A model generated the notes under the pieces. The model saw only the letters and a program-made list of their open reading frames with translations. It was not told the DNA's origin and did no database searches. A stretch of 64,000 bases of DNA from Oikopleura dioica (Eukaryota; Animalia; Chordata), in the NCBI GenBank assembly GCA_907165135.1, contig OU015566.1, forward strand, positions 12,648,001 to 12,712,000. Reading direction: 5' to 3'. How positions within the stretch are numbered: the first letter of the stretch is position 1; each line of letters starts with the position of its first letter. A program made the position numbers and the translations under genes. Of this stretch, positions 1,517 to 64,000 are shown one piece after another.

Positions 1517-2706
1517 AGGATTAACGAGGGCCCATTGTTAAAAGAAACAGATTAAGAAGGGATACCCTTATAAATTGAGGAAAGAAATTCGTTATTTTTG
1601 AAGCTTTTCCTGAATATTTCTTTGATGACTCATCTTTGAGTAAATTTGTCTCTGTAGTAAAATTCGTCTGACTGAAACAATCATGTTCTTTCTTCGATTC
1701 TCTTTGTAGAAATCGTAATTAATACAACTTCAAGCTTCAAGTTCAAAAAGCCATTCACTGTAAAATGGAGCCAATGAGGAGTCGTATTCAAAATTGGCGC
1801 GCGATTGGAGGATTGAATTTTTGTAGTGAATCGGGTCGATCCGCCCGAGCTGCCAGAATCCTACGCAGCGCCGCGGGCAATGAAAAATGGGAGAAATTGA
1901 AAAGAAAAATGGCGAAAAAAACGCAAGAAAGAGAAAAAATGAATAATGAACAAGAAGAACTTCACGAAAGATGAATGATTCATCAGAGGGATTTATTACG
2001 AAGCAGAATAACGGCGATTTTATGAAAAAAAGAGAAAATTGAATAAAAAAATGGAGAGAAAAAGAAAATATTGCTGAAGAAAATTTATTATTCATGAAAA
2101 TTTTAAAATGAAACTGTTGGAAGATAATCTATTACAACCCCCTATTCGGTTTGATAATTTTTTTATATTAAAATGAAGCTAAAATTGCAGTAACAATTTC
2201 CGACCATTCGCTTATATTGCTTTTAAAAATGTTATAAAATGAACTTACTGAATAATTCTTAACTATTCGTATTGTACCGTCTGGTGTTTTTTATTGATGA
2301 AAATTTTTAAAATGAAAAATCTACATTATAAATAAAGTTGTTTATGCGGCTCGATCCACATGTGAGATCAAATGTATTAAAACTGATAATTAAATCTTTT
2401 TTTCTGCAAATTATAAAATTTGATATTTTAATAAAATGACACTGCTGCGAGAGTAGTTCCCACTCACGGATAAAAGAATTGATAAAATATTATAAAAAGA
2501 AATTACTGAATAAATACTCTTCTCTCAATGTTGAAAGTATATATTAAAATGAATGAAACTTCAATGTTAAAATACTTATTAGTAAGTGAGCTACCGGCTT
2601 ATTTGTGTTCAAAATTTCAATATTAAAATAATATACTATTCCTGTTACTTTACTGTTTATTTTATTAAGAGCCTGTTCTCATATCCATTTCATATTCAGA
2701 TGAAAA

Positions 2707-4380
2707 ATGGCGCGGGGTAAAAAGGATTCGGAAGAATCGAGCAATTCTTCGGAATCGGTTCAGTCTTCTGAAGCTGAATCTGATTCCATCCGAAGCCGCT
2801 CCAAGGAAAGAAAGCGCGAAAAGAAAGCAAAGAAAAAGTCGAAAAAGGCATCGAAAGATCGGAAGAAGAAATCTAAGAAAAGCCATCACAGATCTAGGTA
2901 AAGTAGCGACCCAATTCTAAAATGAAATTATATAATTGCTTCAAAATTGAGCTCAAAGAAGACTTTTTTGTGAAAGAATTTGTTTTCCGTGCTAATAATT
3001 AGTTAGCTATTCTATTTTTAGCTCGCGATCCAAAAGCCGCGAGAAAAAGTCCAAGAAGCGAAAAGATTCCAGAGCAGGGCTGGATATTTTGAAATCAACA
3101 AAAATCTCGAACCCCGAAAAAAACATGAATCATCATCTCATCCATTTCAAAAATGCAATCTCAGAAAATTTTCTGTCTGAGATCTCAATTTTCGATTTTG
3201 CAAAAAAATGATATTTGAAATGCTGAGATCTCAATTATCTCAGAAAACTGCGTGAGTTGGATACGCGCGTTGCAATGAAATGAAATTTGAAATTCTGAGA
3301 TCTCAAGCATTTCAGGTCCATCTGAACCAATCACAAGTCTTGCTCTAAGCCCGCGACATTTGTCCGCGGCCCTTGCGCGGTTTGCAAAATTTTGAGATTT
3401 GAGATCTCGAGATCTCAGCAATCTCAAGAATGGAAAAAATTATGACGAGGGAGTTGCAATAATATTGAAATTTGAGATTTGTTGAGATGGTGCAAAATTT
3501 TGACATAGAAATGAAATTTCACACAAAAATTGATTTGAAATTTTTGCTGATTTCAAAATATCCAGCCCTGTTCCAGAGACTCTCGCGATTCGAGAAAAGC
3601 AAAGAAAAGAGGATCCCGCTCGCGCTCTCGTTCTCCACTTTCTTTGAAGCGAAGACATTCATCAAGAGCGAGCCCCCCGCCACCGCGACGAAGAAGCCGA
3701 TCTAATGACAGGTCGAGATCAAGGCGATCGCCTCCCAGAAGATCTCCTCTTAGGCGAAGATCACCGCCCAGGGAAAGATATCGCTCAAGAAGGTAAATGA
3801 CCGAGAATGTCGATTTTGAAAATCTAAAATAATTTAAAATTTACCGATTTATGATCACTTATTTCTAAAAATCATCATCGAATTCTAGCTCCCGATCTCG
3901 CGAACGCGATCGTCGAATTTCCACCACCTCGAGCCGCTCGCATCAGTCAGATTACTCCCGGAAACGCTCGCCAGTTTCTCGCCCCATCAAGGTTGAATCC
4001 CCAGACATTTCAATTAAAAACAAACGCGTCTATATTTAGACCTTCGCTCCCAAATGCGATCTCTCAGCACTAAAAATCCTGCCGGGCGGGTCGACCTACA
4101 AGCCCGAAATGAACGAAGATCAACAGATCCAAGAGCAGCTCAATAATTTCGTATCCAAGGTAGGCGTAACCGGCCCTGTTAACTACACCAGCGTCACCTG
4201 CCCTATTGATCCGGACACTGTTATTACGGAAATGAACACCAAAAAGAACTCGGTCAAGGCAGATAGGCCCAGGTTTTCAAAATGCTCATTTTGGAGAATT
4301 CTAGCGGCTCAGGAATCCAGAGCTGTCACCTTTGGGCCGACTCTCTTCTATCGCCCCTGATACCCTTAAAGCATCGCTGA
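2707..4380 (+). CDS. RS-domain (SR-related) nuclear protein, interrupted in its second exon by a hAT-like element
   Basis: Exons 2707-2897, 3022-3077, 3579-~3792, ~3888-3991, ~4040 onward give a continuous K/R/S-rich frame (..KRKDSR[A]DSRDSRKAKKRGSRSRSRSP..). The last exon frame is ambiguous (stop at 4380 or ~4403). Confidence 0.7.
3075..3570. mobile_element. Non-autonomous hAT-like element (496 bp) with 8-bp TSD
   Basis: TIR cagggctggatattttgaaatca(a/g)caaaaa at both ends (30 bp, 1 mismatch). Direct repeat TTCCAGAG at 3067-3074 and 3571-3578. Interior rich in palindromic GAGATCTC motifs. Confidence 0.92.
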
Positions 4381-4771: not shown

Positions 4772-7700
4772 ATGAATCGCCACGGAAGCGGAAACCTACG
4801 TTTCAAGTGTCGGGTCGGATTTAATCTTACTGATAGATTTTTTCGTCTATTTCCATTTTTATTACCCCTATGTTAGACTTTTTCGGACAGGAGTCTGATG
4901 AAGAAGTAGCAAAACCAACTGCACGAAGTTCTCGTCTGACGAGTCTAAATGGCCTCGACGAAGTTTTCTGCAACTCTAACGACGGAGATGCGAAATGGAA
5001 AGCCGTCGTTCCTCCAGCAACTCAAGTTGGCCCGCCAAAATTGACAAGAGCGCCGAAGATTGAAAACAACAACGAACCAGTTCCAGCTCCAGTCGCACAG
5101 ATGCCTCATCTTATCCCAATGCCTGGAATGGATGTCAAGGAAGAAGATGTCTTTATCGACGAAAACTCACAAAAATATCAAGTCAAAACAGAAAACGCTG
5201 ATCCTGATGTGCTCTCTGATGGAATGGACATTTCTGATTCGGACGAATACGACGAAGAAGAGGTAGTACACTAAAAATACCATCTGTTTTAACAATTTTC
5301 TTCAGAGAAATTTCATCAACAACTCGACTTACTCCGTTGAAACCGGCCAAACTCCTGTCAAGCGAGAGCCTCCTCCGCTAAAATCGCGCCCCCCTCCTCC
5401 CCTTTCTCGACGAAAATCCCATTTTTCAAACGACCACTTTTGCCCAGATTCCTCTCCTCCCGACCTATCCGGTCCGCCAAAGCTCGCAGCAGCGCCAGGT
5501 GTTCTTGAAGACAGTTCTCCTCCGCCAGAAAACGGTCCACCAAAGCTCGAGCCTGCCCCGAAAGTACTTAGTGCTCAAGAATTCAACGCTTATCAATCAC
5601 CGCCAAGATCACTGAAACAAGAAAAAATCGACGAAGCTAATAAGCGACTCAGACCGCCGCCAATCCCAAAGTTCACCTTGCTCAAAGAACCTCAATATCA
5701 TTGTAACAAAGACTTCGTTCGCGCTGGAAAAGATACCCGCGATTTGGACTGCGAATGCCGCCTCCCCAAGGATCGCCGAGAAATCTGCTGCGGAGAAGAG
5801 TGTCTTAACCGAGCTCTGATGGTCGAATGCAGCAACAGATGTAGAACCGGCGATCGTTGTACTAACAAGAACTTCCAACGTCGAAAATACGCGCCCACGG
5901 AAGTCTTCTGGGCCGAGGGCAAAGGCCACGGACTCAGGGCAACAGCCTTCATCCCCCGAGGGACGTTTATAATCGAGTATCTCGGGGAAGTTGTGAGCGC
6001 AAAAGAATTCAAAAAGAGATCGCACGAATACGCGCGCAACGGGAAGAAGCATCACTACTTCATGGAGCTCTCGCGACAGGCGACGATTGACGCTTATCAA
6101 AAAGGTGCCGTGTCGAGGTTTATCAATCACTCCTGCGAGCCAAATGCAGAAACGCAAAAATGGACCGTCAATGGGCTCCTACGAATTGGTTTCTTCGCGA
6201 TCAGAGATATTCATCCAGGGGAAGAAATCACCTTTGATTACCAATTTATTCACTTTGGACAGGGTCAGAAATGTCTCTGCGGGGCGCCTTCGTGCCGTGG
6301 TATTATCGGCAGGGAGGCTGATCGAATCCCTGCCCAAAGAAAAGCGGGGGACAAGGAGGAAGACGAGAATTATGGCAAGCTCATTCTAAGTACGATTTTG
6401 ACTTTTCGTTTTCCTTTATTTACTAATTTTCTGATCAGATACGAGGAGGGTAGACTGCTCAGAAGATATGGAGAAACTTGCTAGGAACATGTCTAGAACT
6501 TCCTCAAGAGAAATAAAAGCGAAATTGAAAGCCCTCGACCTCATTTTGGTAAAGAAACATCATCTTTATCCTCTCTGATGCGTATTTTCAGAACTCAAGT
6601 AAAAAATTGCAGTCTGTCTTCATGACCAACTTCGGGCTCGAGATCCTCTGGAGCTACGCGAAAGAAGTCCACTTAGACGACAATGCGCTCAAGCATGACC
6701 TACTCAGGTAATATACCTATAAATCGACGTCTGTCAATTTGAATATCGTTGTTTTAGGCTACTTGGCGACCTAGAAATCTCACACCGCGATAAGGTTGAA
6801 GATAATGGGCTGATTGAGATTATTGATAAATGGTCCAAAATTGAGGACAAGTATCAAGAGAAAAGCTTGAGTATAGTAACGAAATGGAAGAGGCTCACTA
6901 GGCGTGTTCCACTGAAACGGGAAGCGACCCCTCCTGCAGAACCTGAACGAGAACCAACTCCTCCGCCGATGCCAACACTAACTCGCAGAGATTCAATTCG
7001 AAGACGAAGTCCCAGACTAGCGAAGGAACCATCTCCTGAGGCTGAAAGAAGTCCTGAGATGGTGCCAGAGACTTGGCGAAAGATTAAAGAAGATCGCAGA
7101 AGGCAATTCGAAGAGAATGTTAGAAGAAGGGACGAACAAGAAGCGCATTTCAGGGAAATCGCCAAGCAAAATGTTGATCAAATGGTACTCGACGCAATGA
7201 ATGAATCAGACAATGAAAACGACGAATTTCATAATCATCATGATCCAAGAACATCAACAGATTCAGCAGTTCTGCCAAATGAGATGGAAAATTCAACTGA
7301 AAACATAGAGGATTTCATACCAGACTCACCGCAAGGAAATCCATACAATGACCCGGCTCATTGGGAAGCAGATGAACAGCGAGATTACATAAAGCGGATT
7401 ATGCAGGATCTAAAACCATCAGAAGACGATGAAATAATCTGTGACGGCGCGGGCTGCGTCGTCTCCAGAGACGATCAAGGCGGACTAATGGTTTATATCC
7501 GCGCTGAAGATGTTGAAGATTTCGAACAGACCTGGAGAGACGGCAAGAAATACCAGGAAAAGAAGGAACGCGCGAAGAAAGAGAAAAAAGACGCCGACGC
7601 GGCAGAGCTCGAGCGTAAAATTGCACAATCGATGGAAACTACAGTAGCTCCCGCAGATACAACTGTCGCAAATGGAGATGCTGTTCCCGACGAAATGCTG

Positions 7701-8167
7701 CCCGACGGCTGGAAATCGCACAAAGATGACGAAGGCTCGACTTATTACTACCACGATAAAACACGCGAAACGAGCTGGGACCCGCCACAAATGAGCAAAG
7801 AAGAGTACGAAACGAAGATCGGAAAACTCAGACGCATGCTTTGTAAGTTCATCGCCGAGGTTCTTCTTGCTTATCGCGATGAAAGCACGACGCACGGGCG
7901 AATAACTAACGAAGCTGATTACAAATATCTGATACGAAGGTTGTCCCATGGCTTGAGCAAAAGAATCACGACAGAGCTGAATACATTTCGACTCACAGAG
8001 GAAGGCAAAATGATGGCTGCTAAATACAGGTACTTACTATCGACTTTCAAAATGCAGGAGATGACCACTCCTTTAGCCATAAATATATGACGCGCCAAGG
8101 TGAATGTTATATAAGAAGGCCTTCTACTCAGAAACCACCGTCAGCCCCAACCAGTACTGTATCCTGA
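4772..8167 (+). CDS. SETD2: Histone H3K36 methyltransferase SETD2/Set2
   Basis: AWS (CECR..ICCGEECLNR..ECSNRC), SET (KGHGLRA, FIIEYLGEV, RFINHSCEPN, GEEITFDY), post-SET (CLCGAPSCRG), WW (LPDGWKSHKDDEGSTYYYHDKTRETSWDPP) and C-terminal SRI-like region, joined by short introns. Start at 4772 or 4870. Confidence 0.95.
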
Positions 8168-21352: not shown

Positions 21353-24300
21353 GCATTTCTCTCTCGTGGTTAATTAATTAATTATACACACATACGTTTA
21401 CATTCAACTATTCACTATCGAGCTTCAGCTAGATGCGGCTCGCGGAATCCAGTTTTCGCTCCCAGGCAAGCTCCATTGGGGCACTCACTCAATGCTCAGG
21501 CCCGACTCGTCACTCTAAAAATATGTAGTACTGCCTAAACCTCAAACTATGCTCTCACAAGCACCACATTTTACTCTATCAAGTAGTGGATGCTTTTTTC
21601 TATAATTTTTTCCCAATTTTGACGAGTCGCCCCTGGGCAGTGGCCCAATGGGCACCTGGAGGCGCCCGCGAGTCAGCTTTAGCGAGCAATCATGATGCAT
21701 AACTTTTCAGTTTTTATTTTCACGTTTTGAGTGCTTCAAAACATGTTATTCCGACTAGCGATAGTTTCATTTTATAAGTGCCTGTTTTTAGTAAGCCGCC
21801 TCTTGTCCGACCCTGGCCAGTGTTTTGCTTTAGACCCGCCGTTCTGAATAAGACGCGAGAATAAGGCTCACATTTTTATATATATTTATTTTTTCCTTTT
21901 TTCAAAGAGAATTAGACAATCGGTGTATTGGCCAATGCCTGTATGTGTATACAAGACGAAATCCCAGTCGTTTGAGATGCTTTGAATGCGCGACTGGGAG
22001 AGAAAAAAGTTCTTCCTCCCACACGATTTTGAGGAGAATTAAGGGGTAATGCACATACGGGAACTGCAGCCATGCCCGGTTGGCTATTTTCAGCTGCGGT
22101 AACTCCCTCTCCCAGGACCCAAACGCACCCCATCCATATCCCCAATTTGCCAGAACACCACTCATAAGTTCAACTCGAGTCCAAAAATCCGCAAATACCG
22201 AGACAACATAAAGCGCTAGAAAACAAAACAAAACGTCAACGAAACAAAGTATAAAACACTTAGCAGAACGAGCGTGGTTTACAGCGAGCACTCGCCTAAG
22301 GGCGGCACAGTAAGGGCTTAAAGATACGGGTACTTGTAAATATAGGCATCATGCGATTTTTCACTTTTTTCGTGAATAACGAAGTCGTGGCGAAAGGTTT
22401 CTGCGGGCTGGTAAGGGGATCAATATTTTGATTTTCGGTGGATTCACTCTTGGAATCAGACTTGACAAAAACAGATTTACCTCTCTGGAGAGGATAGAGA
22501 CAAAATGTTATTTTACATTACAGTAGTTGTAGATTATACCCACCGTTCGAGATATTGCCCCGGGCGAGTTCCTAACTTTCGCCAACGATCAACCCTTTTT
22601 CTATTAATTTAAATATGCGTGATCTGTGGCTAAGTCTTTTCCGACAGTCTACCCGACCGGGCGCCAGCCTCAACTTTTTTTCATTCGTCATTGAACTCAT
22701 GCTTCTGTCTTTTTTCATCTGCGTTTCATATTTTACCGTGTTCTTACTGTAATAATTTTTACTCTTGCTGCATGCGAACAGGCGTGACAATCAAGGGATC
22801 GTGTAAACAAATCTAAATTGCTCTTTTTCGCTGTATTAAGTAAGAAGTCAACGATTCCTTGTGTCACCGGTCGGGTACGTCGTTTTTCGCTCGTTTACCT
22901 CTACCCATCTCTTTCTCCTTTACTCTCCCTTCTACTTTTTCTATCAGTCGGAAAAGGGCCACAGTCAACCCAGCTTCTGCTTTCTTGGAACCATTCGAGA
23001 GTTCCCAGTATTGTGATTTCACTGCATAACGATGACTTCGCACGGCTAGGTTCGTTTGGTGGCGTTTTATCGAACCGTTGTCTGGAGACCAATCATGTTG
23101 TGTACAGCGCCTGCTTCTAGCAGATTCTCAACCCCATAAAAACATGAAAAATAAAGAAAAAATATTGATGTCAGAGTGTCCGTTCAACAAGGTGTAACTC
23201 AAATTTTGGACACTCTGGCTCAGATGTGCCTAAAACCCAAAACCCCCCTTCCCCCTCAGACCAAAGAAAAGCCCCCCTAAAAGCAACTCACCCACCCAAA
23301 AAACAAAGTTTACTATCCAAAACTGAGAATCTGGCTAGGCAGGGGTTGTAGGCTAAATCTGATTGGCTAACCGGGGCGGAGTCGATGAACGGTAACCTAC
23401 TGTAAATGTTTTCCACCCGCCTAGTACGTCGAGGTCTGGGCTGTCCAGTCCTGAGGTCGAAGTAAATAACGTTCAAACAAAATATCGCAGGGCTGGACGT
23501 GCACGGCTATTACTTCACTGGCCACCCGATGGTGCTTGAAAGCACTCGCTGGTCCCACGCCACTACCACCAGTTAAAACACCTGCTCTCTCCCACCAGCA
23601 CCAAAAGTTCCACAAAGTTGTATAAGGTACAAATTTCCCTCCTTTCTCAATCGAGCATCGAGTGTGGCAATTTTTCGAATCCAGTAAACAACTAAAACCC
23701 AAACCCTAAAAAACGGTACTCCGGTAGGAGGCGAGCAGGATACAAACACACATAAAAAAATCGAAAAAAAAACTTTCCCCAAAAAAATTGAAAAAAGAAA
23801 AAAACTCTCAACCAACAAAAAATATCAAAACAACAAAAATCTCTCCCCTCCTCCTGAATGTTCTTACTCTCCGAAATAGTTCATATCTGACTCTACATCA
23901 CACAAGCTATTACTGTAACACTTAATATAGTCTAATTTTTATAAACATCGAACTCTTGGTGATCTCCTAACTAAGTGTTGTTTATTTGTTATTCTTGAAA
24001 TTGCATGAAGAAGCAGGCGGCAGACAGTCGATTTATAAGACGATGACAGCAGATTTCTATCAGACTGTAACGTGAATGCATAAACACTTGTAGCGCTTGA
24101 AGCCCTGGGGAAGAACGCAGATGCCCTCAAGCGTGCGTAGACTCTTTATTTTACGCGGATCAATTAACATCAAGATCTAGCAGCATTTTCATCAAGCAAC
24201 TTGATTAATTGAATCAAGTTCATTTGGTTTACTACTCTTGGCAAACAGACTTTGCCCTACACGGTTACATAAGATTACATCACCGAAATTTTGACGAGGA

Positions 24301-56500: not shown

Positions 56501-56858
56501 GAGTAGGCTTCACTTGGACAAGAGCTTCACTTGGACAGAGCTTCATTTGGACAGAAGCTTCACTTGGACAAGATTTTTACGAATTTCAAAAACGACTATA
56601 TATGAATAACGTAACTAATAATAAATTATTATGGCGAAATTTCATTAATAATTAACACTATAAGATGTTTTTCTTTATCTAAAAAGTGAAAAATACCATA
56701 TTATCACCAATAAATTTATTTATAAGATGTTTATGGAAGAAACTTGCAAATTTTATAAAAAGCGTTACTTTCTTCCTAAGAATCGTACGTAAAATTCGTA
56801 AAGAGGACCTTTAAAAAATCTTGTCCAAGTGAAGCTTCTGTCCAAGTGAAGCCTACCC
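56501..56858. mobile_element. Mutator-like MITE (358 bp) with 9-bp TSD
   Basis: Ends g(a/g)gtaggcttcacttggaca.. inverted, with tandem (A)GCTTCACTTGGACA subterminal units. Direct repeat AAATTCGAT at 56492-56500 and 56859-56867. Confidence 0.8.
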
Positions 56859-57628: not shown

Positions 57629-58345
57629 CAGAGTTTGAAATGCTCGCAAATGCTCGCGAGCGCAAAGAGCGAGAGCAAAAATTTATCATTGCTCTGAGAG
57701 CAGGAGAGCGGGAGCATGAAAATAAAGTTGCTCGAGAGCCAAAAGAGCGCGAGCCCAAATTTGAAACCGCTCGCGAGCGCGGAAAGCACGAGCGCATATG
57801 TTGGCAATGCTCGGGAGCTAGACGAGCGGGAGCGGCTGCTCTCGTGCTCGCCATGGAATTGACTCACGAGCGGCTCGCGAGCAAAATTAAAGGAACAATT
57901 TTTTGCGTTATTATTCACTTTCATGGATAAATTTCTCTCGTGGATCAATTTTTCGTGTTTCCGATTTGTGCAAGCTTCATTAGGTCCGTAATCTCGGCAG
58001 CGGAACGCGAAAAGCCGAGAGTAAATAGATAAAAGATGCCCACCGCGAAGTGCTAACTCCTGTGAGAGGGACTCATTTGGAATTTGTTACGGGGTCGCCG
58101 AATCATTTTAGGCTCTTGAAAGCTGCTCGCGAGTCAGATTTTTCAGCTCGCGAGCCAATCGAGCGAGAGCAAAATTTGACCAGTGCTCGGGAGCCAGGAG
58201 AGCGAGAGCGCGAAATGAAATGTGCTCACGAGCGCAAAGAGCGCGAACGCTGAAATAAATGCGCTCGGGAGCACAAAGAGCATCATGCTCGTGCTCGCTC
58301 GCTCTCAAGTGAGCCGCTCGCGAGTCTCGAAAATTTCAAACTCTG
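57629..58345. mobile_element. Non-autonomous hAT-like element (717 bp) with 8-bp TSD
   Basis: Perfect 13-bp TIR CAGAGTTTGAAAT. TGCGAGTC at 57621-57628 and 58346-58353. Interior packed with GCTCGCGAGC/GAGCGCG motifs. Confidence 0.9.
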
Positions 58346-60651: not shown

Positions 60652-61982
60652 TTTATAAAATAAATGAAAATAAGTTGAAATAAGCTCGGAAGTTTTGTGT
60701 TAATTGGCACGGGCGCCAGTTTGATGGATCTGCTTCGGAAGCGCGCTGGACACGATGAACATGCTCGATCGAGAAGGGCCAGATGGGCGATGGAGACGGA
60801 TCGGGACAAGGAAGCTTCCGACTCCCTAATAGAAGACTTTTGATGAAGATCGACCAATTCTACTTTTTTGCCGTTGACGATTATATAGCGTGATTGGTCG
60901 CCTTAGCACTTTCGTCGAGAGACTACGGCACCGATATGTATCGATTAGCAACAGTTGATTGGCAGCTTCCGAATTAATTACAAAATCCGACAACTCCGCG
61001 CGCTCAAAAGGATGAATAAGCGTCCCGATGCCCTGGCCTGTCGCCTGATCCATCACACGTTTGGTTTAGTTTTTGGCCCCATAATGAGACCAGTCAGATA
61101 TCCACAGTCGCCCACACTGTGGTCAACGGGTTCATCAGGGCACACGCTACGACTAATCAAAGGCCAATTAAGGAGATTGATTGTTTAATGAGATTTTAAA
61201 CGAGAAATTTGAATAAGAAAAACGAACCTATCTAGACATAAGTATGAGAATTAATCGACAGCGACGAGAAACTACTAATATAAATCAATGCCGATTTCGA
61301 TAATTTATCGACACGATATAATTTGAATGAAAGGGGAAAGTAGTTTGACAGGTTTAATAGCTTCTTGAGTTATATGAAGCTCTAAATATAATTGACGAGC
61401 GCACATTTTACCTTTCTTATATCTTTGCATCGTAAATCACACCTGTGCTTACCAGTGAGCAACCAAGGGCGAGCGTAAATCATTGAATTTATATTCCTTT
61501 CCGCTACTTTTCGTTGAAATCAGCGAGAATGCCCTGCAAAGTCGATGATTTGAACATGTGAGAAGGTCTCAGCGCAGTATCTCACATAAAAAGGGTTGAT
61601 ATTGTCCGTATGTAATTTAATTAATAGAAGAAATAGACAGAATCAAGAATACATCCAGATCTACAGTTGTAGTACTTTGATAAGACGTGGTATTTTTGAA
61701 GGAACTCTCCGGGAAGACATTTTGAGTTTGAGGCAGTTTATCTGGATTGGTAAAAATAGGTCAATTTACATAAAGATTGGCGTAAGCATTGGCTTCTTGA
61801 ACAGGTCTCTTACTCTGCGGTAATTTTAAATCTCAGTATCTTCCAGCAACACCTTAAAACTAGACAAACTTCATCCTCATTTACTATTCCAAGAACAATT
61901 CCGATAAATAGTCTTGTTAGAAGTTTATTTCAATCGTGCTTTTTAGTTTGGTAGTTTGCTACAAAGGGATAAAAAGAAATTC

Positions 61983-64000
61983 TTAGGAATTATGCGGCTT
62001 TTTCTCTTCTTACCGCGGTCAAATCTTCTGGATCGGTCGAGACTTTCTTTGAAGATTTGTAGTAAAAGACCTGAACGACTGTAAGAGAGATTTTCAAGGT
62101 ATTCTACCTGGCAGATGATAAGGCAATCGACTGTAACTTGGATTGAGCCACAGAGAATAAATTGGAAAGGCTGATTCAGAAAGACGAAATATCCTGTTTT
62201 GAAGATATCCCCAACGAGCCAGCCGAGAACCATGAACATTGACATTCCAGTCGCTAAAATAACTGTAAAAGGGTTCCCAAGCTACTTGTCTTACTTGAAC
62301 TATTCTGGTAGTTTTTCCATAGCTGAGGCGTGGCAAGAAGGGATTCTGTTCCTAGCGCGAGGAAACCAAGGATATTGAAGTAACTGGCTACAATTGAGTT
62401 TGGGAGTTGAAATATTCACGATACTCTTACGTGAGTGAAGAAAAACATAAGTGGTAAATGCAACAACGATCCAAAAAAGAACCATGAACTGGAGGTAATC
62501 AACAAAATACGTCCAGTTCCAGAACTCCTCTGGTTTCAGGCAGGGCTGCACAATTGGATTGGAATCCAATTGGTTTCCAATTCCAATTGGATTGGATTGG
62601 TAAATTGGTTGGAAAAAGGGCGGGAAAATCAGGGTCTGTCCAATTGGACAGCCCTTCCAATTGGAAAATGGGGGTCCAATTGGCAACTGGTAGCCAATTG
62701 GTAAATTGGCAAAATGATTGGATCGAAGCACCTCTTTTCACGCGGAAATGCCAAATTATGCTTGAATTAGTGCCTCAAACGATCAGTTCGTCAACAATTT
62801 TCTCAAAAAATCGAAAATTTCAAAACAGCCATATTTTGGCTTCTTAGTGTGCCTGAAAGTTCAATTCATCATAAAAACTTGTTGACCAGGGAGCACTTTT
62901 TGACCAATAAAAATCCAAAATTTTAGCGAAATTGGGACTTTTTCGTCAAAAAGTCCGATTTTCAAACGCGATTTTGAGGGCTTGCCAAACTGCCTGAAAG
63001 CGCCTATATTGCCCAAATGTCCGAAATGCCCGCTCTTGCCCGGCCAAATTTTATGGGCTTAGCTGTCCGAATGCTCGGCCGAACCCTTTTTCCCCGAATG
63101 CCCGATGCCGATTCGCTTTAACCCCTATACGCGAAGCTGCCTAAAGAACCCCCTTACCCGAAGTGTACAATTTTTGTCGATTTGGCCTTCCTCTCAAGAT
63201 AATCTTTTCAAAGTATCAGATTATACTAAATCTATCATTATCTTTCGAACTGCACTTTTACATTTTCGGTAAAATTGATATTTAGTGCTAAAATTGGGGA
63301 AAGAAATTTTAACACTATAAAATTTATTATGTGATAATTATGAAAAATACTCATCTGAGCCATTTTTAACGGTGATTTTCGAATTCTCCATACTAAAAAA
63401 CCTAAGAATAAACTAAAACTGAAGCAAAAATGAGAAAAGGGAATTTTTTTCTTCCTTGGAGCGCGCGAGGTGGCGTGAGAAAATCAGTACTGGTGCAGTG
63501 CTCACTGGGCTTATCACGCGGAAATTTTGCGGAAAGGTGGGCAAGTCTTGTGCAAATACTCATTTGAGTTTTCAGGTCATTCTGACCCACCAGCTCCATT
63601 GGGCGAGCGACTATATCCCGAAATCGACAAAAATTGTACACTTCGGGTATAGGGGTTAAAAATTCTCTCGTTTGTTAATTTTAAAGGATTATTTAAAAAT
63701 TTTAATTTAAAATTTAAATGAACTAAAAAAAAACTGACTTTTCCAATTAGAATCCGATTTTCAATTGGAATTTGGCTGTCCAATTGGCAAACTCGTGCTA
63801 ATTGGAAGCAAGATTCCAATTGCCGATTGGTCCGCCAAATTCCAATTGGAAATTGGAATTGGATTGGAATTTGGTTGGATTGGCAAAATTTGGGTTGGAT
63901 TGGATTGGCAGTTGGTTGGAAAAATCCAAATTTTTTTGCCAATTGTGCAGCCCTGGTTTCAGGTCGGCCATATATCGCTCAGAGCCATTTTTCTTGCTGT
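61983..64000 (-). CDS. SLC66A2: PQ-loop repeat protein PQLC1/SLC66A2, 3' part (5' runs off window), interrupted by a hAT-like element
   Basis: ERYMADLKP|EEFWNWTYFVDYLQF..ILGFLALGTESLLATPQLWKNY..GMSMFMVLGWLVGDIFKTGYF..QFILCGSIQVTVDCLII matches the PQLC1 second PQ-loop as recalled. Confidence 0.88.
62541..63955. mobile_element. Non-autonomous hAT-like element (1415 bp) with 8-bp TSD, composite
   Basis: Perfect 17-bp TIR CAGGGCTGCACAATTGG. GTTTCAGG at 62533-62540 and 63956-63963. Arms of ~200 bp rich in CCAATTGG/GATTGG repeats. Confidence 0.93.
63122..63655. mobile_element. piggyBac-like MITE nested in the hAT element
   Basis: TTAA at 63118-63121 and 63656-63659. Termini CCCCTATAC(G/C)CGAAG, and shared inner block ccgaagtgtacaatttttgtcgattt in inverted orientation. 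Confidence 0.8.

Follow-up and report, generated by a model that had tools for sequence, protein, structure and literature searches.

A transposable element lies in a coding exon of SLC66A2/PQLC1, a PQ-loop gene of the larvacean Oikopleura dioica, near the end of the stretch of DNA analyzed here (the window; 64,000 nucleotides, 64 kb, of contig OU015566.1, assembly GCA_907165135.1). The insert, a non-autonomous element of hAT type, is 1415 bp long (window 62541-63955) and is flanked by terminal inverted repeats (TIRs) and a target-site duplication (TSD). Deletion of the element together with one TSD copy leaves SKKNGSERYMADLKPEEFWNWTYF..., a single open frame on the minus strand, and the restored exon, when translated, reads ...SKKNGSERYMADLKPEEFWNWTYFVDYLQF... 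in that one frame. We tentatively favor the reading that this is a polymorphic, newborn, transposon-derived intron that would be spliced GG-AG; the insertion itself is real. A preliminary description of this DNA had proposed such an intron, and its account of the site is borne out: a hAT-like element with perfect TIRs and an 8-bp TSD does occupy a PQLC1 coding exon (g3467, PF04193), its removal with one TSD copy gives contiguous coding sequence in one minus-strand frame, and the unspliced frame stops inside the element. Coordinates below are those of the window, and the gene strand is the minus strand.

62541 to 63955, unstranded: non-autonomous hAT-like element (composite miniature inverted-repeat transposable element, MITE), 1415 bp, with perfect 17-bp TIRs and 8-bp TSD
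62541 to 62557, plus strand: left TIR, CAGGGCTGCACAATTGG; 3' end of the element on the gene strand; contains the AG at 62547-62546
63939 to 63955, minus strand: right TIR; 5' end of the element on the gene strand; supplies CAG/GG, with the candidate GG donor at 63952
62533 to 62540, unstranded: TSD copy GTTTCAGG (CCTGAAAC on the gene strand), exact match
63956 to 63963, unstranded: second TSD copy GTTTCAGG, exact match
62566 to 62701, unstranded: subterminal array of six exact palindromic CCAATTGG motifs (motif scan)
63122 to 63655, unstranded: nested TTAA-flanked (piggyBac-like) MITE, 534 bp, with TTAA copies at 63118-63121 and 63656-63659
63953 to 64000, minus strand: interrupted exon, upstream part (...SKKNGSERYMADLKP), which runs on past the window end
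62431 to 62529, minus strand: interrupted exon, downstream part (EEFWNWTYFVDYLQFMVLFWIVVAFTTYVFLHS), identical to residues 92-124 of the annotated protein P0152
61829 to 62387, minus strand: other g3467 exons, carrying the second PQ-loop, with small GT-AG introns between them (PF04193, exon map)
62530 to 63952, minus strand: candidate GG-AG intron, 1423 nt, giving exact exon restoration by sequence logic
62546 to 64000, minus strand: in-window part of the intron in the public g3467 model, GT...AG, 1468 nt (P0152 mapped on L001)

The Interrupted Exon and Its Element

The interrupted gene is g3467 (SLC66A2/PQLC1), on the minus strand of chr1 in the Okinawa assembly OKI2018_I69 of O. dioica. Its locus (L001; GCA_907165135.1, OU015566.1, ~12.71 Mb) has 3001 bases identical to the minus strand of the window, and the public model, at L001 6001-8488, extends from window 61829 to past 64000. 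Pfam PF04193 is matched on two exons, marking the product as a PQ-loop protein, and identity to the vertebrate SLC66A2/PQLC1 orthologues is 44-50%. Read without splicing, the frame of g3467 stops 52 codons into the element (...NLASN, then the stop).

The empty allele looked for in the preliminary description is found in other O. dioica lineages. An intact exon is seen in P0002 and P0151, which are cDNA-type sequences of other lineages, and in four metagenomic contigs of genomic DNA from another lineage, L002-L005; of these four, L002 aligns on both sides of the insertion site with no space for 1423 bases. Orthologues from three other lineages have the loop at the same length (ADLNIKEFW, GDMKPGDFW, SDFNPEDFW), with 23 residues between ELV and FW in each; the loop reads ...ALADLNIKEFWHW... 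in P0002, ...FMGDMKPGDFWNW... in P0151 and ...LSDFNPEDFWMW... in P0153. Because the exon is intact in these lineages, the insertion is derived and the ancestral exon had no intron here. Judged by such comparisons, the insertion is a recent gain in the Okinawa lineage, and a very recent one, since its TIRs and TSD are perfect.

On the plus strand the site reads ...CTCTG GTTTCAGG, then the element (CAGGGCTGCACAATTGG ... CCAATTGTGCAGCCCTG), then GTTTCAGG TCGGCC..., and the two 17-nt TIR arms are 100% complementary. The TIR motif occurs three times in the 64-kb window (0.09 expected), a count matched in none of 100 shuffles. All eight exact copies of CCAATTGG in the window fall inside the element, near its ends (1.0 expected; 0/100 shuffles reach 8): beyond the array of six there are two further exact copies at 63780-63849, and many degenerate ones. 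These subterminal repeats are presumed transposase binding sites. hAT terminal inverted repeats start with the consensus YARNG, and the CAGGG that starts the TIRs of this element fits it. Inspection of open reading frames (ORFs) within the 1415 bp found no transposase-like ORF. With 8-bp TSD, short TIRs and short subterminal repeats present and no such ORF, the element is assigned by its sequence hallmarks to the hAT superfamily as a non-autonomous member. An Rfam scan of the element returned nothing above threshold; the matches below it were to hairpins and fell within the subterminal repeats. That the element might carry a gene or a known RNA was considered and rejected, there being no meaningful ORFs and only sub-threshold Rfam matches.

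No second copy of this element's family is present elsewhere in the 64-kb window, where a lone CAGGGCTG at 23488 has no partner end. The family is nonetheless multi-copy in the genome, because word depth across most of the element is 5-47x that of the flanks in two DNA runs. Shorter variants also exist, as contigs that join 62571 to 63851. The nested MITE bears long inverted ends (inverted-repeat pairs within 63122-63655), and contigs of the X28 sample join 63117 to 63656, skipping 538 bases with four letters shared; there are therefore other copies of the outer element without the nested MITE. The ends of the nested MITE are high-copy in the DNA runs, and its interior (63249-63603) stands at ~1.5-2x flank depth.

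The same reads bear on the state of the allele in the Okinawa population. In the assembly-matching sample, a mature male, a short-read contig of 4251 nt (X25) crosses the left junction with 0 differences, extends 27 nt into the element and has no break at 62540; depth is flat along the left flank and no alternative letters appear, as for a single haplotype. Since this contig is unbranched in the 31-mer graph, no empty allele is present at a detectable level, and to judge from contig structure the animal is apparently homozygous for the insertion. In the second sample (X28), the sole left-flank contig differs from the reference at 23/641 positions (3.6%) and ends exactly at 62540. Such an end is expected of a branch between filled and empty states, so the insertion may be polymorphic, and the contig structure suggests that this sample may carry both. 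All nine of the 23 differences that are exonic (coding) are synonymous (62150, 62195, 62320, 62326, 62335, 62338, 62486, 62504 and 62507), and g3467 is therefore under purifying selection in the Okinawa population. Over window 61900-62540 the differences of this second Okinawa haplotype cluster in the tiny introns, an illustration of the very high heterozygosity found in this species.

Exact Removal and the Candidate GG-AG Intron

The preliminary description placed an intron at 63952..62530 on the grounds that CAG begins the minus-strand TIR and also follows the second TSD copy; both triplets are present. On the gene strand the context is ...GACCTGAAAC CAG/GGCTGCAC...CAGCCCTG CCTGAAAC CAG/AGGAG..., where a slash marks the cut. 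A CAG after both TSD copies makes the direct repeat effectively 11 nt long, so that 12 equivalent deletions restore the exon. Among these 12 exact cuts, only GG(63952)..AG(62530) has an AG acceptor; the corresponding intron, which reads GGCTGCAC...GAAACCAG, is 1423 nt long and would restore the mRNA sequence exactly, as had been claimed. In terms of splice-site potential, CAG/GG comes from the TIR and AAACCAG/ from the TSD and flank. The ends fit the pattern of the GV-AG introns (CAG/GGCTGC...AAACCAG/AG, with the exon ending in AG). On the gene strand, neither the upstream exon part, as far as the window covers it, nor the initial ~150 nt of the element contains a GT dinucleotide.

The history that we tentatively propose would run as follows. 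A hAT-family element with the nested TTAA MITE already aboard would have inserted recently into the SLC66A2/PQLC1 exon in the Okinawa lineage, and the allele would have stayed functional through the tolerance of the O. dioica U2 spliceosome for G(A/C/G)-AG introns. The donor would be cut at the CAG/GG of the terminal repeat (63952) and the acceptor at AAACCAG/, formed by the second TSD copy and the next three exon bases (62530). Removal of these 1423 nt would restore the original frame exactly, with the junction ...CCTGAAACCAG/AGGAGTTC..., and pairing of the TIRs in the pre-mRNA could bring donor and acceptor to a distance of no more than a dozen nucleotides or so. When the entire intron is folded, the TIRs pair with each other in both the minimum-free-energy (MFE) and the centroid structures, which places donor and exact acceptor within ~14 nt across the base of the stem. 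Because the ancestral exon was intact and loop length is kept, exact removal would give a conserved protein.

The setting is a permissive one. In O. dioica, 11-12% of all introns are of non-GT-AG type (PMC8008620), GA-AG introns are common and backed by RNA, with a conserved A at +3 of GA donors (PMC7072748), and a GV/AG intron class is recognized in tunicates (PMC13326754). The assertion that larvaceans splice G(non-T)-AG introns is thus documented.

Several observations weigh against GG-AG splicing of this allele. In the in-window part by itself, an in-frame product free of stops results from 91 different G(non-T)...AG pairs; in-frame excisability is thus common at the level of sequence, and exactness alone is special. 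Exact restoration in turn would depend on the CAG after the TSD, which is either a coincidence of ~1 in 64 a priori or a matter of survivorship. As a 5' splice site the GG donor is weak: beyond CAG/G, positions +3 to +6 of GGCTGC (CTGC) fit at +5 only, and +3 is C where A is reported for O. dioica GA donors (PMC7072748). The 3' end of the candidate, CCCTGCCTGAAACCAG, is atypical of the GV-AG class, for which a pyrimidine-rich end is expected. Median intron length in O. dioica is 49 nt (PMC8008620), and the candidate, with its 1423 nt, is ~30x as long. The exact acceptor has a competitor in the AG at 62546, 16 nt upstream of it, and in the predicted fold the donor is inside the 17-bp stem, where U1 binding could be hindered. 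The public annotation, which was built with RNA hints, models a GT-AG intron at g3467 and not GG-AG. RNA reads are few: of two bulk runs labelled as the same species, X5 gave 16 reads and X6 gave 5, all partial, 90-95% alike and confined to the last exon, a level of likeness that points to another cryptic lineage and makes them silent on splicing. 

Searching the protein collection with the full-length orthologue found no Okinawa-lineage cDNA protein for g3467, the sole entry being P0152, a product of genome annotation, and a junction-centred fragment search of the same collection gave no candidates. Metagenome scans with the site-adjacent exon and the terminal repeat gave 0 matches.

The preliminary description went further, arguing that symmetric TIRs would supply the donor in either orientation. 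That much stands, in that CAG/GG is offered on either strand; the implied exactness does not, as exact restoration here needs a fortuitous CAG after the TSD, and the generic combination of CAG/GG with CAG/CCCTG leaves 16 extra bases and shifts the frame. A general version of the idea would be that hAT MITEs ending in CAG/GGCTG are a recurrent source of new O. dioica GG-AG introns, with a donor on either strand, insertions that survive where the duplication or flank offers an in-frame AG, and relaxed G(non-T) recognition that neutralizes them. We regard this as speculative and somewhat unlikely.

A second hAT-type MITE in the window bears on it. This one, found in a scan for inverted repeats and duplications, is 496 bp long (3075-3570), with an 8-bp duplication TTCCAGAG at 3067-3074 and 3571-3578; its ends start with the same eight bases, CAGGGCTG, and it is otherwise unrelated to the PQLC1 element. 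With the MITE removed, an arginine/serine-rich frame on the plus strand is open through the site. The pair GG(3078)-AG(3578), using the same CAG/GG, would be in frame and would add one alanine, so that its product could be told from that of an empty allele. Set against splicing here, the annotation (gene ranges recovered via g3447) has no intron over this MITE and gives two small models, 2700-3092 and 3705-4073, the first of which ends inside the element. This two-model annotation is uninformative on both coding status and splicing.

Competing Readings of the Allele

It is quite possible, if doubtful, that the insertion is a null or strongly hypomorphic allele, with unspliced transcripts running into the in-frame stop, 52 codons inside the element, or with splicing from internal GT donors followed by degradation. 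Such an allele could persist by being recent, by the gene being dispensable in culture, or by drift in a small laboratory population. Perfect TIRs and TSD, the mark of a very recent insertion, are what this account expects, as are the in-element stop of the unspliced frame, the weakness of the proposed GG donor and the absence of a cDNA-derived Okinawa protein from the searched collection. The X28 contig end at 62540, in hinting at polymorphism, points the same way. The laboratory culture that yielded the sequenced animal was at generation 47 (PMC8008620), and homozygosity at that point can also come from drift of a null allele, which detracts from the case for a functional intron. A null allele is harder to reconcile with conservation of the gene, both among O. 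dioica lineages and with vertebrate SLC66A2, with purifying selection on it within Okinawa, and with the lack of an empty allele in the assembly-matching sample. Were the allele null, the site would be an ordinary polymorphic transposon insertion, and a reminder that the g3467 model (231 aa) is distorted.

We consider it unlikely that the excision drawn in the public annotation is the one that occurs. The model joins a cryptic GT donor to the AG at 62546. Its donor, GTC/GTACGAGT, has its G at window-equivalent 64013 (L001 6301), 13 nt past the window end and so out of view of the preliminary description, with the exon ending at L001 6300, and its acceptor, TGTGCAG/CCCTG, lies within the terminal repeat; the junction is GAGCTTGTC/CCCTGCCTG. 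P0152 accordingly reads ...MFALVELV/PCLKPEEFWNW... (231 aa vs ~246 aa for exact removal), losing 20 loop residues (VRVNHSKKNGSERYMADLKP) and gaining PCLKP, in frame. The five residues PCLKP are translated from the terminal repeat and TSD. To this extent the annotation speaks for such an event, P0152 reading ...ALVELVPCLKPEEFW... and the exon map of L001 giving GT(64013)/AG(62546). Both splice sites are canonical, AG 62546 is the first AG met when scanning from inside the element, and the segment affected is, in an alignment by eye, the variable loop between the PQ-loop halves.

The same model may have a simpler origin, however. The OKI2018_I69 gene models were made by AUGUSTUS with RNA-seq hints (PMC8008620); AUGUSTUS favors GT-AG, and this may be the only canonical in-frame path available to it. 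A non-canonical junction with 12 equivalent placements may be unusable as an AUGUSTUS hint and is unlikely to survive as one. The same GT goes unused as a donor where the exon is intact, P0002 and P0151 both keeping the loop, and the loop has kept its length in three other lineages (23 residues from ELV to FW). The acceptor, too, lies within the 17-bp stem. The public model of g3467 is distorted by the insertion, and we treat it as a rival explanation, possibly a gene-predictor artefact, and not as evidence of cellular splicing.

A misassembly of long reads that misplaced the element in the exon, conceivable for a repetitive element in a Nanopore-based assembly, is most improbable given the exact 8-bp duplication, a signature of real transposition, and the independent X25 contig that crosses the left junction with 0 differences; the chimeric assembly named in the preliminary description as a possible refutation was checked in this way, and the left junction is no artefact.

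Known Systems and Neighboring Elements

That introns can arise from transposons is well established for algae, fungi, dinoflagellates and other groups (PMC9860276, PMC11282704). The nearest parallel to a GG-AG intron in PQLC1 is in another larvacean, Fritillaria borealis, where, as PMC11282704 and PMC13326754 recount, MITE insertions with repeats and duplications are found at intron borders and AG-AC/AG-AT introns are removed by the U2 spliceosome. As here, the Fritillaria MITE introns (Henriet et al. 2019, as presented in PMC11282704 and PMC13326754) occur in a larvacean without a minor spliceosome, at lineage-specific positions and with TIRs and duplications, and it is the transposon end together with the duplication that fixes where exon meets intron. 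They differ, according to the same sources, in that AG-AC/AG-AT predominate with a YAY/TAC signature, account for >90% of introns genome-wide, and have been shown by RNA and assays. The PQLC1 case, in Oikopleura, is a candidate GG-AG intron seen in the sequence of one insertion of 1.4 kb, probably a polymorphic one.

Introners (Huff et al. 2016 Nature; Gozashti et al. 2022 PNAS, PMC9860276) resemble it in being non-autonomous DNA transposons in transcribed genes, with one splice site from the element, the other from the duplication or flank, and the frame restored. In contrast to the PQLC1 element, they are present in hundreds of near-identical copies, are demonstrably spliced and are usually GT-AG/GY-AG; here copy number comes from word depth only and the splicing is a candidate one. 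Calling the element an introner, as the preliminary description did provisionally, is premature, given the 91 other in-frame G(non-T)-AG pairs in the in-window part. Tunicates are not mentioned in the text of the introner survey (PMC9860276).

The GV-AG introns of O. dioica itself (PMC8008620, PMC7072748, PMC13326754) resemble the candidate in starting with G and a base other than T, in ending with AG and in having an AG/G context at the donor. Unlike the 1423-nt candidate with its GGC start, they are mostly very short, and their GA donors have a conserved A. A transposon origin for them is not stated in the texts searched, and a literature search whose reach excluded Denoeud 2010 and Henriet 2019 found no text linking them to hAT elements. 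'Repetitive introns' in O. dioica are attributed to Denoeud 2010 in PMC4540971.

The intron complement of O. dioica gives the question its interest. The species has among the highest intron turnover rates of animals, its 11-12% of non-GT-AG introns are unexplained, and, as Fritillaria demonstrates, a MITE insertion is able to turn into a non-canonical intron. If the favored reading of the PQLC1 insertion is true, a GG donor at a transposon end would tie hAT elements to the GV-AG class, and the birth of an intron would become accessible to genotyping and RT-PCR in a chordate that is kept in the laboratory and has a generation time of 4 days. Denoeud et al. 2010 reportedly described the GV-AG class (GA/GC/GG-AG) of Oikopleura dioica introns. 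Wessler and colleagues are said to have found, in the late 1980s, that exon insertions of maize Ds/Ac (hAT) in waxy and adh1 are spliced via cryptic sites in the Ds termini. Those Ds insertions are likewise non-autonomous hAT elements in coding exons, with splice sites in or next to the termini, and their removal partly rescues gene function. Their removal is reportedly imprecise as a rule and draws on several GT donors in one Ds end, whereas the exact cut in PQLC1 would need a GG donor.

Three further features of the window lie away from the PQLC1 exon. A 717-bp element (57629-58345) has an 8-bp duplication TGCGAGTC and ends CAGAGTTTGAA; no open frame crosses its site, which is apparently non-coding. 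A TA-flanked inverted-repeat element of 348 bp (56506-56853), with ends GGCTTCACTTG, could be a Tc1/mariner-type MITE. Adjoining the arginine/serine-rich gene at the second MITE is a gene for a SETD2-like histone methyltransferase (4870-8167), with AWS, SET, WW and SRI domains and 1021 aa in the public annotation.

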